Shown here: positions 9,827 to 15,025 of the stretch, one piece after another
Numbering within the stretch: the stretch's first letter is position 1
Layout: the number at the start of each line of letters is the position of its first letter
From: Zygophlyctis sp. KS116
Lineage: Eukaryota > Fungi > Chytridiomycota
DNA length: 32,000 nucleotides
Reading direction: 5' to 3'
Assembly (NCBI GenBank): GCA_054661495.1
Contig: BAAFSQ010000038.1
Coordinates: 1-32,000, forward strand
Made by a program: the position numbers and the translations under genes
Notes under the pieces: model-generated
Databases searched by the model: none
Told to the model about the DNA's origin: nothing
Seen by the model: the letters and a program-made list of their open reading frames with translations, nothing else

Positions 9827-12800
9827 CCTTTTTTAAATGGTCTATATAATAAAATTCAATATTAAATACCCTGCCCAAAAATCATATTTCTTGGCTTTTG
9901 GTGTCTCTGCAGTAAATGAAATCGCTGGAGAATATAGATCAGGTCCATAGGCATGAATGTATTTAGAGTCCTGCCATTTACAAATTGAAAATTACCTTTA
10001 ACGCTAAAGATTGAAGTTTTTCTAATTGTGATGCAGTTGATGATTTTGTCTGAATTGAGTAATTAAACACGGTAGAATCAGTAGATCTGGGATACGGTTT
10101 TGAGATGACAGTTTTCTAAAATTAAGCTGAAAAATAGTACCTTTGCATTCAGCATTACAAAGTTGGGGACTCTAAAAGGAGTTGACCGGAAATTAGGATT
10201 ACGATCTTGTATTCGTTTGGGAGTTGATCTAATTCTTGACATAAATGCTTTTGTAGGGATAATATAGGCTAAACTCAGATTCTAAAGTTAATAAATTGAA
10301 GTTACAGGGCTTGCAAGCGATTCAAGAGATACGGATGCGTTTTCCGAATCAGTTACGGATTTAGAGGGTGTTTCTGAAAAAATCCAGGCTTCTTCGTCAG
10401 ATACAATTACTCCCTGCCCTTTGAGTAGAGAATAAACAAGGCTGGAATTAGGAAACTCCAGTAATTTAGTAGTAGAAGGAGTATTTTTAGAATATAGTGT
10501 GGAAATAAACTTTGCTATTTTTCCATTAAGTTTCTCGTTTGCCAAGTTCTGAATGTTATTTACTTGAATATGACATAGTCCTGGCGTATAAAATTTCCAC
10601 AGTCTTGTAGAAAATGTAGTTTCAACACTATAGAAAACTTGTGCATCTGAATATCTAGTGTTAAAAGAAAACTGTTACTCCTCAACTATTTTGATCAGGT
10701 TTCGGAATGAATCTTTATCAACTCCTTCAAGTAATATGATTCTTGAGACAGAATCAAATATATGATAGCCGCATAAAATGTTCTAATAAAATTTATAATT
10801 TTAAATTACCAAAGATGTACTCATTTGTTGTTTTTGAGATAATTTATAACCCGAAAGTAATTCATTAATCGATTTCTCATCAATACCTAGAGCTTCTGAG
10901 TTAATAGAATCAATAATCGTTCGTATTGATTCAAATAATCCAACGTTTTTGCAACTATTCAATAAGACTTTTTTTAAGTTTACTCTGCAAGAATTGCTAT
11001 ACGTGCAAACGAACCGATATTAGATGAAGAGACTAAATGGATTGATTTAGTAAGGATAGGATATGGAAGAAATATTGATAGATTGATCGAGGAAAAGTTC
11101 TCTAACCATTGGGCGGGTGGTAAGCTTTCATGATCTCCTAAGCATAAAACATGAAATATTACTTATTCTGGATTCAAAAGGGACTATTTGAGTAGTTGAT
11201 TCATACTGAAATTTTCCAGTAGCTAATTCTGATAAATCGAATTCAGCGATTCCATATGGGGCTCTCGCGTTGGTTTCTGAAGTTATTTTTCCATCAGATC
11301 CTATTTCTAGACATTAGAGACTACAAATACCCTTGGCCAAGCTAGATAAATCATCTGGAAGTCGAGGATCTCGGTCATGAATCTATTAAATAAGTCTTGC
11401 AAAACCGAAATACCTCAACCTTGAATTTCTTTCGCATTAAATCCTCACTAAGCTTTTCTTCATCTATAAGCCCCGGAAGAACTAAATGCTTTGTGTTGAA
11501 TCTTAGCACTGGTCCGTGAGAATCTCTACTAAATGATTCATGAACATGAGGGTCCCCAAAAAATCGAAATTTACAGAATCTTTTCATTAAAATCATATAA
11601 ACTTACACTCGCTGACATTTTTCATCCAGATAAGAAAACCCATTTGGGTTAGAAGGCATACCATCTGCAGTTTGAATCTTGATGCACATGGGATTAAGCC
11701 TATAATTAAACGTTGATTGTCGAAATACACCATAACTTGTTCAGGAGATAACAACTGCTGATCCAGTTTAATCGAAAATGAAAGATATTTAATTCCTTCA
11801 ATTTTAGTTGTAATACTATCATATTTAAGATTATTTAAGTCTTACTCTACTTTTATCTCTGTTTTACCCAAGAACAGATCCGCAAGATCCATTGTTACTT
11901 TTGCGACAGGAATGGTTACGAATTCTTTGCTTGTTTTTTTACCAGAACTTGATGGTTTAGCCATATTAATGGATTTATCTGGTAAGGGATTTTTTTGGCT
12001 TTTAGTAGGCGAATTTTCAAACTTGACGGTTCCTTTCTTCTCTAGACATAAGATGCTCTACAATTACTTCCTTGCGAATGATCCTTTGACTCTGTATCAT
12101 TTTCTCCGATATGAACTTTTTCTTCTGTTTTGTTCTGGTCATCCATCTGCTTATTACCATTCATTTCTTTCGAAGTAGATGTCAAATTAGAATGTAGAAG
12201 GTCCTTTGCAACAACTGTTCCGTGAGGAGCAAGAATATCTAATGGGTGATTCCCATGGTGAGGGCTAGGCGGAGTTTTTGGTCTGATGATCTTAAGTGCT
12301 GCAACTGACGATGCGGATCTTGATTTTGTCAAACTAGCAGCACCTGCATCCATCTCGATGTGTTTTTCAGGATGCTGATAGTGATGAGGATGGGGGGTGG
12401 CTGATCTACTAGACCCCGAACTTGGAGTTGATAAGGTTCTTGTGGGAGATATATCTGCCTCTGAAAGAACCGCCTCTGGAAGTGCGATAAATTGCTTGAC
12501 CGATATTCTACGTTTGTTTAATTTGCTAAGGCCGTTCTTCGCAAGGGAAAACTTTCGTTTCGCTAGTGCTTCTAAAGAAATTCTTCTTTCATTGGAAGAT
12601 GCCCATCCTCCTTTAAATGACTTAAAGTCTGATCCAAATGCTTGATATTTTGACTGAATACTCGATACGGTCGCATTTTCAGCTTTGACCACCTCAAAGA
12701 GAGTAAATGTGATTGGATTTTCGTAAATATCTGCAATGAAATTCTATTATAAATTATATAATTAACCTTACTGTATTTACTGTTATATCATGCATACTTT

Positions 12801-13113
12801 GCCATGAATTTAGATTCCATGCGAGTGATTCAGTCTAGAATCAAAGTATTAACCAATACCTTTCCTTCACAAGAGCTTCCAAAGTAATATGTGGCATAGA
12901 ATTTGTGGAAAAGATCTTTCTGATCCTTCTTTTCTTCCTTGGGAACTTGATCATTAAGTATTCTTACTTACTCCTCTCTAATCCATATAGAATTTGGATT
13001 TTTGCCTTGACTGAATGTTCTCCGATTGGTTTAGAGAACATTGGCAACTCATCGACCCCATCAGGACCATTAATAACCGATCGGGCTACATAATTATCGT
13101 TATCATTATCCAT
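9823..13113 (-). CDS. Multi-intron gene, probable CFAP92/DUF4550-like (C2-like folds) cilia-associated protein
   Basis: ATG 13113 (MDNDNDNY). Exons joined by 24-30 nt introns, e.g. 12946-12971; includes ORF-track pieces 12042-12692, 11375-11596 and 10288-10545. Spliced motifs MDLADLFLG, NPMCIKIQTADGMPS, KFRFFG..KVE(V/T)HDRD, PYGIAEFDLSEL, VFNYSIQT resemble CFAP92. Stop is at 9842, or at 9823 if 9842-9869 is spliced. Confidence 0.6.
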
Positions 13114-13167: not shown

Positions 13168-14239
13168 TTAAGCTACCAAAAGTTTATTGGCAGTTTTCTT
13201 CACATATTGCTTTTCAGCTGGAATACCCAAAGGCGCAGTGTTGAAAATGAGAGTGAGAGGGATTTTGGCAAATATGTGGGATACGAAGTATAAAAACTCC
13301 CCTTGTGCAAAAGAGATAAATTCAAAGCGGACCAACGCATGAACTAATGCAACTAATTTTAAGATCAATGAATTTCTTACAACCATGCCATGAATATGCA
13401 CTAATTGTTTGAGAAAGCTCCATCAACGACTCATTTACGGGACAGTCATTTTCTCCAGTAATTGCCTTCTTATACATATCCCATATCACCTGAACAGCAA
13501 TGCTATGGGTACCATAAGCTAATAAGAGCATCCATTGAGAAACTGGTCCTTTTGTAATGGATCCAATCAATCCAAAGATTGTTAAAAGCCATGAGTTCAA
13601 AACGGCTCGCTCAATCATTGGTGATTCTACTTGAGAAACAAAACCAATAATGCAAGAAAGACTTTCCATATCAAAGAACCATTCAACATATCTGCACAAA
13701 TCTACAGGGTAACCCATTTCATCTCTCAAATATGGCGTCAGTTCAAAGTAATGCATGACATAAACACCCATTACAGCGAAATTCATGAGAGTAGTGGCTT
13801 TGGTAACAGCAGCCTTTGAGGGGTTATTTGATCCTATATAGGAGAACAAACTGAATACGGTAACCAAAAAGAATGTAAAAATTCCAAGTTGGTACACTTG
13901 TGGAGCATATTCTCTTTCAAATCGGAATTTTTTGCCACTTGAAGAATATCCCAAAGCAGCAACTAATGCAGACACAGTAGACCTATTTAGTCAGAAGAAA
14001 ATGAAGTTTACCACAAGAGGAATGTGGTGACTCTGCCTTGAATAAACTTTGAGATCCCTTTCATAGCTCCAGTATTTGCTAATTGTTTAAAGTATAGATC
14101 ACTTACTATTTTCCTGCTCCCGATGTTTAGAGGTCGGACATTCACATTCATCACACTTTGATGTTATCTTTCCTGTCATAAATTCAGCACATTCACAGGA
14201 ATTGCAAGCTCCTCTAAAAACCTTTATATCGTCAATCAT
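13168..14239 (-). CDS. Microbial (type 1) rhodopsin, fungal RhGC/NeoR-like 8-TM module without an enzyme domain, 328 aa
   Basis: Exons 14239-14107, 14078-14012, 13982-13381, 13352-13168 (987 nt; introns 28/29/28 nt). Helix C GYPVDLCRYVEWFFDME; helix F SWHGFALVH; helix G HIFAKIPLTLIFN (K297). An extra TM0 (FLLWSTVSALVAALGY) follows an N-terminal Cys-rich segment. Confidence 0.9.
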
Positions 14240-14343: not shown

Positions 14344-14932
14344 TTAATCCCAACAACAGCATAAGCAACATCCAGCTAATCTAATGATCTTAGCATTAAT
14401 TAATTCTTACAGACCAAGAATACCGGCAGCCGCAGGATTATTCAATGCTCCAGTATTTGATGATTGCTGTGGATACTGTTGTGAAGAATTTCCCATTTGC
14501 TGTTGATTAGGATCTTGTATTAGAGATTTACATTTACTTACATGGAGAATAAGGTTGACCATACGGCACAACAGATGAAGGTCCACCAGGATATGATGGG
14601 TTATGTCCTGAAGTTCCTTGATCTATTGTTTAGTTTATGAACTAGATACTTTGAGATCCTGGATATCCTGCAGTCACTTGATTTTGACCAGGTGGGGGAC
14701 ATTGACCAGGCGGGGGATACTGTTGTGGAGGGGGGTACTGTTGCGGGGGAGGATACTGTTGCGGGGGAGGATACTGGCCTGGTGGAAAGTATTGTTGTGG
14801 GGGAGGATTTCCTGGATTTCCAGTTGGATTGTCTAAAAGAATAAGATTAAGAGATTTACATGGAGATCCTTTTTGATCCCTTCCAGATTCATTCTTTTCT
14901 TCATCGGGATAAACATATTTCGGAGGGTCCAT
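14344..14932 (-). CDS. Pro/Gln/Tyr-rich CYSTM tail-anchored protein
   Basis: ATG 14932; PPPQQY repeats. Four tiny introns (e.g. 14833-14859, 14381-14410) give the C-terminus GILGLLAGCCLCCCWD*. Confidence 0.88.
14690..14805 (-). repeat. 18-nt coding tandem repeat (PPP[Q/G]Q[Y/C])
   Basis: About 6 units seen directly, e.g. ggatactgttgcgggggag repeated. Confidence 0.9.
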
Positions 14933-14962
14933 CAGTGAGAGATTAGAGCTTCGAATCAACAA

Positions 14963-15025
14963 TGACGTCAAGAAAAAAACGCAAGGGCTAAAACACGCGA
15001 ACAAACGCGAACAAACGCGACACGT
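14963..15025. promoter_or_regulatory. CRE palindrome TGACGTCA plus 3x ACGCGA at 10-bp period in the CYSTM / paralog-1 divergent promoter
   Basis: TGACGTCA 14963-14970; aaacacgcga acaaacgcga acaaacgcga 14991-15020. Confidence 0.6.

Follow-up and report, generated by a model that had tools for sequence, protein, structure and literature searches.

Histidine at the helix-G counterion position in a conserved clade of cyclase-less, enzyme-rhodopsin-type opsins

The window that we analyzed, 32,000 nucleotides from the chytrid Zygophlyctis sp. KS116 (GenBank assembly GCA_054661495.1, contig BAAFSQ010000038.1, positions 1 to 32,000), has ~37% G+C and looks like part of a compact eukaryotic genome. 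On its minus strand, between 14239 and 13168, lies an opsin gene whose four exons splice into a protein of 328 amino acids (Table 1). We built this gene by reading the DNA and by comparison with homologs. An open frame of 217 codons (13975-13322, minus strand) reaches a stop immediately after the W-H-G of helix F, and the lysine of helix G lies in a different frame. The spliced 328-residue model was used for numbering, alignment, dN/dS estimates and tree building; similarity searches were run exon by exon.

Table 1. Coordinates of the opsin gene, its retinal-pocket motifs and the N-terminal modules of the opsin genes in the genome
Feature	Position	Strand	Content
Exon 1	14107..14239	-	Start codon and N-terminal Cys6-His module
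Intron 1	14079-14106	-	28 nt, GTAA...TAG
Exon 2	14012..14078	-	Beginning of the extra N-terminal helix TM0
Intron 2	13983-14011	-	29 nt, GTAA...TAG
Exon 3	13381..13982	-	End of TM0, helices A-E, first half of helix F
Intron 3	13353-13380	-	28 nt, GTAA...TAG
Exon 4	13168..13352	-	Remaining half of helix F, helix G bearing the Schiff-base lysine, short tail, stop TAA (13170-13168)
Cys6-His module, this opsin	14123-14206	-	First exon of the gene
Cys6-His module, L008	L008:2350-2484		First exon of the gene
Cys6-His module, L009	L009:2394-2531		First exon of the gene
Cys6-His module, L011	L011:2686-2820		First exon of the gene
Helix C motif	13661..13693	-	R164-Y-V-E167-W168-F-F-D171-M172-E173-S; aligns with Rh-PDE R-Y-A-E-W-I-I-T-C-P-T
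Helix C codons	R164 13693-13691; E167 13684-82; W168 13681-79; D171 13672-70; E173 13666-64	-	
Helix F motif	13339..13390	-	W265-H266-G-F268-A269-L-V-H272; split by the 28-nt intron 13353-13380
Helix F codons	W265 13390-88; A269 13350-48; H272 13341-39	-	
Helix G motif	13264..13278	-	H293-I-F-A-K297; His at the D212 position, four residues ahead of the retinal lysine
Helix G codons	H293 13278-76 (CAC); K297 13266-64	-	

The neighboring genes on the same strand lie ~70-170 bp away: a Ser-rich protein downstream (12042-13098, minus strand) and a Pro/Gln-repeat protein upstream (14407-15004, minus strand). Both are syntenic in the metagenome contigs L004-L007, and a functional tie to the opsin is not evident. 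The ORF at 12042-12692 was considered as a C-terminal extension of the opsin and rejected; it has conserved upstream exons of its own, and the stop after helix G is conserved. The opsin contig (C38) contained no match to a Guanylate_cyc domain, and hence no rhodopsin-guanylyl cyclase (RGC) beside the opsin gene.

Seven other lineages of the family (L004, L005, L006, L007, L012, L013 and L014, the last also designated P0008) were recovered from metagenome and Logan contigs, and all have open frames under the same exon logic. Exon 4 is kept in L004-L007, L012 and L013, and P0008 reads through this region without an intron. The presence of introns differs among lineages: intron 2 is missing from L004 and L007, in which the stretch from exon 2 to exon 3 is uninterrupted by the 29 nt, and intron 3 is missing from L014. 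Introns across the family measure 25-31 nt, and every one starts with GTAA and ends with AG (TAG in most). Because P0008 lacks intron 3 and reads W-H-A-F-A-L-V-H without interruption, the helix-F splice junction of the Zygophlyctis gene is confirmed. The helix-F intron is also identical in position and phase in one of the RGCs of the same genome (L009, W-N-C-F/P-V-V-Y, the slash marking the intron). An independent metagenome yielded a 99%-identical contig. Metatranscriptome contigs from three studies (151-251 nt, 98-99% identical) match parts of exon 3 only; none spans an intron, and DNA carry-over is possible, so these short, intron-free matches suggest rather than establish that the gene is transcribed.

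Exon 3 matched the Pfam family Bac_rhodopsin (PF01036) with 28.2 bits, above the cut-off of 24.6, and with 27.3 bits in the genome scan. The closest PDB entry by sequence was the membrane domain of the rhodopsin phosphodiesterase Rh-PDE of Salpingoeca rosetta. The intronless member P0008, with a 48-row alignment, served as a stand-in for AlphaFold2 modeling, which returned a confident model (pLDDT 92.4, pTM 0.89) with eight helices, H3-50 and seven more. Among solved structures the 8-TM membrane domain of Rh-PDE matched this model best (TM-score 0.74/0.85), and bacteriorhodopsin and halorhodopsin also matched. Since the model has eight helices and its best solved match is 8-TM Rh-PDE, the predicted fold is that of an enzyme rhodopsin with TM0, and the TM0 sequence is conserved in the Zygophlyctis opsin. 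K297 lines up with the corresponding lysine in Rh-PDE and in every relative among the RGCs and neorhodopsins (NeoRs). The Zygophlyctis protein stops 31 residues past K297, and all eight lineages end 25-35 residues past the lysine. The opsin thus has neither a C-terminal coiled-coil linker nor a catalytic domain, in contrast to two opsins on contig C71 of the same genome, both of which have a cyclase.

The genome contains four Bac_rhodopsin-like genes, among them the two RGCs, which lie in tandem on contig C71. All four begin with a Cys6-His module that is found nowhere else in the genome. In the opsin under study the module consists of C12, C15, C17, C29, C32, C34 and H39, in the pattern C-x2-C-x-C ... 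C-x2-C-x-C-x4-H with R-G in front; its six Cys and its His are invariant in eight aligned sequences. A search of the module against Pfam gave no match, and AlphaFold2 modeled it at low confidence (pLDDT 59.7). From its residue pattern it looks like a zinc-binding domain specific to the enzyme rhodopsins of this lineage. The fourth opsin gene (G000:C43:47777-49093; L011, L017) encodes Asp at the D85 position and keeps D-x3-K intact; its Cys6-His module is followed by a long insertion, its contig contains no cyclase domain, and it sits on a very long tree branch. No member of the RPE65 carotenoid oxygenase family was found in the genome assembly, itself incomplete.

Few residues of microbial rhodopsins are as conserved as the Asp or Glu of helix G, which is central to color tuning. 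Its counterpart in the Zygophlyctis opsin is His. In bacteriorhodopsin numbering, D85 corresponds to E167, T89 to D171, P91 to E173, P186 to A269, W189 to H272 and D212 to H293. We checked these equivalences against three references: Rh-PDE, the two RGCs of the same genome, and 48 relatives. The helix-G His of P0008 aligns with the Asp of the D-x3-K of Rh-PDE. The two cyclases read R-F-F-E-W-N-A-T-C-P-T and R-F-I-E-W-L-T-C-C-P-S in helix C. In the same order, their helix F reads W-T-S-F-P-V-I-F and W-N-C-F-P-V-V-Y, against W-H-G-F-A-L-V-H in the opsin, and their helix G reads D-I-V-S-K and D-I-V-A-K, against H-I-F-A-K. A sequence-only reading of this locus had made the same residue assignments, which prove correct: the spliced minus-strand gene gives identical numbering, and the alignments agree.

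We compared the eight lineages to assess the conservation of this pocket. Core identity to the Zygophlyctis opsin is 89% for L007, 85% for L004, 69% for L005, 58% for L012, 50% for L013 and 46% for L014; L006 is 98-99% identical across the entire protein. His stands four residues before the lysine in seven of the eight (H-I/V-F/L-A-K). It is encoded by CAC in Zygophlyctis and L006 and by CAT in the others, and the codons of the adjacent Ser and Lys vary synonymously. Pairwise dN/dS values were 0.05-0.17 at dS 1-2. K297, R164 and E167 are each present in all eight lineages, as are H266 and H272. W168 and W265 are kept in seven, D171 in seven (Asn in L014), an acidic residue at 173 (Glu or Asp) in seven (His in L014), and Y141 is retained across the clade. 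The conserved changes specific to the clade cluster at chromophore-facing positions. Together with the gene structure, these data show that the gene is intact, is under purifying selection and encodes an eight-helix opsin of the enzyme-rhodopsin type.

Searching 1.84 billion representative proteins with a profile returned 58 relatives. Outside the clade, 36 aligned rows cover the helix-G position, and they carry Asp (22), Glu (9), Ser (3), Asn (1) or Gly (1), with no instance of His. Among the relatives and the genome's own paralogs that we aligned, His at this position is confined to this clade. A metagenome scan with the family alignment added a single locus, and word searches starting from P0008 or from the alignment of the helix-G exon added no new members. 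The sequence-only reading had called a His here exceptional, had asked whether HxxAK recurs in homologs, and had named a sequencing error or private mutation as what would undo it. Its view of the residue holds against the 36 outside relatives, the motif does recur, and error or private mutation is excluded by the seven lineages, two codons and low dN/dS just described. Residue 147, at the end of helix B (codon 13744-13742), is Arg in nearly all relatives (Y/F-x-R-L-T-P) and Glu, Lys or Gly in the His clade.

The sole exception among the eight lineages is L005, with Thr (ACA) at the His293 position. Because L005 is nested among His-bearing lineages on the tree, its Thr is derived. L005 also carries H144S and H226Q, at positions where His is invariant in the six His-bearing lineages compared. 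It further has W168Y and W265M, replacing both pocket Trp, and lacks the Cys6-His module, yet it is under purifying selection. This combination suggests either a coordinated functional shift or coupling among the replaced residues. L014 retains the helix-G His without the extra helix-C carboxylates, Asn and His replacing D171 and E173. Since L005 has replaced the His and both Trp, and L014 has Asn and His in place of D171 and E173, the triad is not strictly fixed.

In a maximum-likelihood tree the His clade was supported at 100/100. Its sister (99/93) is an apparently cyclase-less clade with Glu in helix G (P0010, P0013 and P0062), and the two together adjoin the genome's own RGCs (99/95), which are also the nearest paralogs of the opsin (25-32% core identity). 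The NeoRs, recognized by the motif E-W-x-H-D-E/Q and by their named members, including those of Podochytrium and Chytridium lagenaria, form a separate clade. Independent origin of the NeoR-like helix C of the His clade is thus favored by the tree but not established, as an approximately unbiased (AU) test did not reject a tree joining the His clade and the NeoRs (p = 0.31). This sister clade and another metagenome clade of enzyme-rhodopsin relatives appear to be cyclase-less and have unusual triads: E-H-E or E-S-E in P0010, P0013 and P0062, and E-G-S, with Ser at the D212 position, in P0038, P0041 and P0046. Counterion remodeling after loss of the cyclase seems to be recurrent.

Two groups of described pigments bear on what such a pocket might do. 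The first is NeoR, which in Chytridiales forms the near-infrared subunit of heterodimeric RGCs and is characterized by high fluorescence and UV/NIR bistability. In NeoR the T89 position is occupied by Asp (D140) and the D212 position by another carboxylate (E262) (PMC10622942, PMC12875766); the sequence-only reading had drawn this parallel, and the published record documents it. The NeoR triad E136-D140-E262 bears at most one negative charge, with D140 protonated. Crystal-structure-based QM/MM calculations find that the near-infrared state fits a protonated, neutral E262 and D140 best, and E136 may act as the counterion (bioRxiv 10.64898/2026.10.08.757671). The E-D-E triad of NeoR is not matched in the Zygophlyctis opsin, which has E167-D171-H293. 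The second group, the cyclase-less NeoR-like rhodopsins GpNeoRh and GhNeoRh of Rhizophydiales, was described in 2023 (Broser et al., PMC10622942). GpNeoRh, whose helix-G residue is Gln, has its absorption at 630 nm and fluoresces but shows no photocycle; GhNeoRh is colorless and bound no retinal on expression (PMC10622942). Negative charge density at the Schiff base is low in neorhodopsin and GpNeoRh, and their absorption lies at 630-720 nm.

Our preferred reading, to which we assign a probability of roughly 0.45, is that the opsin is a retinal-binding, non-enzymatic offshoot of the cyclase rhodopsins that forms a red-shifted, pH-labile pigment. The protein would still bind retinal. If His293 is mostly neutral, E167 would be the sole anionic counterion, and D171 would probably be protonated, like D140 in neorhodopsin. 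The E-D-H triad might then recreate, with another residue, a low negative charge near the Schiff base. A single anionic counterion, E167, would lead one to expect a chromophore that is red-shifted, pH-labile or both. A red shift would also be favored by the Met at the T90 position, the missing helix-F Pro and the polar His at the W189 position. The pKa of the Schiff base would be lowered and coupled to the titration of His293, such that acid pH or light could yield a UV form; protonation of His293 near neutral pH would drive the Schiff base towards deprotonation. We hold more tentatively to a bolder version, in which the imidazole-based triad gives a far-red and/or brightly fluorescent pigment in which pH changes around neutrality switch the color or the protonation of the Schiff base. 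Imidazole counterion chemistry of this kind, if true, would be new among described microbial rhodopsins.

Since the opsin has no catalytic domain, its output would have to pass through other proteins. The opsin has the Cys6-His module in common with the two RGCs of the genome. The simplest and most likely route would be to act through these RGCs, either as a non-catalytic partner or as a modulator. The RGC genes sit on different contigs from the opsin gene, and this partnership is pure inference.

Next in our ranking, and unlikely in our estimate, stands a pigment that binds retinal with its Schiff base deprotonated at rest: a UV or violet form, possibly bistable, owing to the lack of the main counterion from helix G and to partial protonation of His293. 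By established electrostatics, exchanging a carboxylate for His, whether cationic or neutral, lowers the pKa of the Schiff base. The sequence-only reading had offered far-red absorption, a UV or deprotonated state, bistability and pH sensing as alternatives, and the published precedents for the effect of His293 point both ways. In RgNeoR and OmNeoR the E262Q substitution abolishes the protonated pigment (PMC12875766), and CcNeoR3, a natural protein, has a deprotonated Schiff base and an absorption near 410 nm; GpNeoRh, with its neutral Gln at the equivalent position, nevertheless has its absorption at 630 nm (PMC10622942). Unprotonated NeoR E262Q and colorless GhNeoRh indicate that a visible chromophore can be abolished when the carboxylate of helix G is lost. 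The invariant E167 argues against a UV resting state here, as it could serve as the counterion in the way that E136 may in NeoR.

Ranked after the UV resting state, and also improbable, is an opsin-fold protein that no longer binds retinal and acts as a structural or regulatory subunit, for example an escort or tuner of the cyclase rhodopsins, or in an unrelated membrane role. The change of the helix-F Pro to Ala, the His at the W189 position and the missing helix-G carboxylate are consistent with such a protein, GhNeoRh and CcNeoR4 bound no retinal when expressed, and L005 remains under selection without either pocket Trp. Against it, the lysine is kept in all eight lineages across saturated synonymous divergence, R164, E167 and Y141 are kept and both Trp persist in seven of the eight, and the clade-specific changes at chromophore-facing positions suggest tuning, not decay. 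An artefact (sequencing error, private mutation, pseudogene or mis-spliced model) is refuted for practical purposes. The gene does require three very short introns, none of them spanned by an RNA contig; the same exon structure nonetheless opens frames in seven other lineages, P0008 confirms the helix-F junction, introns of 25-31 nt recur and are found in an RGC of the genome as well, dN/dS is low with His encoded by two codons, and the 99%-identical contig comes from an independent metagenome. We retain the red-shifted, pH-labile pigment as the leading reading.

Cyclase-less NeoR-like opsins were already known (2023, PMC10622942); what is new is a conserved clade with His in helix G. Within the searchable literature, no natural or engineered His at the helix-G counterion position was found, an absence that is not proof. 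How much negative charge is required around the Schiff base is currently debated in the neorhodopsin field, and the natural variants (Thr in L005, Asn and His for the helix-C carboxylates in L014) provide a test set for the negative charge that the Schiff base needs. Should the pigment prove red-shifted or fluorescent, the 328-residue protein would be a compact candidate for near-infrared reporters and for pH- or voltage-sensitive tools. For the photobiology of chytrid zoospores, the family is a second group of opsins without a cyclase, and one of a different build.

With the homodimeric RGC/CyclOp proteins, including the pair on contig C71, the His family shares TM0, the Cys6-His module and Glu at the D85 position, and the RGC L009 further shares with it the helix-F intron, H144 and H226. 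The RGCs differ in helix C by Thr or Cys, Cys and Pro, in helix F by Pro and in helix G by Asp, and they continue into a coiled-coil linker and guanylyl cyclase. Rh-PDE (PDB 7cj3 / 7d7q), the closest solved protein by sequence and fold, has the same 8-TM layout and Glu at the D85 position; its phosphodiesterase domain, its helix-G Asp and the Thr-Cys-Pro of its helix C set it apart.

The likeness to NeoR lies in Glu at the D85 position, Asp at T89, the absence of Pro at P91 and P186, and the 8-TM architecture. Like CpNeoR, which absorbs at 721 nm and in which Met follows ci2 (Schiff-base counterion position 2, T89 in bacteriorhodopsin), the Zygophlyctis opsin has Met directly after the Asp, at the T90 position. 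Unlike the His family, NeoR carries Glu in helix G and continues into a complete linker and cyclase.

GpNeoRh and GhNeoRh offer a close parallel: they too belong to the chytrid enzyme-rhodopsin lineage, lack the linker and cyclase and have a remodeled retinal pocket, and we count their neutral residue at the helix-G counterion position as a likeness to the His family. Membership of the His family in the GpNeoRh type was considered and rejected, as the pocket substitutions that define the type are missing; the distinction was drawn from the published description. By that description the helix-G residue is Gln in GpNeoRh and GhNeoRh and His in this family, and W86, W182 and Y185 have become Gln, Asn and Ile or Val in the former, whereas the His family keeps Trp, Trp and Phe (W168, W265 and F268). 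The genes of GpNeoRh and GhNeoRh adjoin RGC genes on the opposite strand, unlike the opsin gene of contig C38, which stands on a contig without an RGC.
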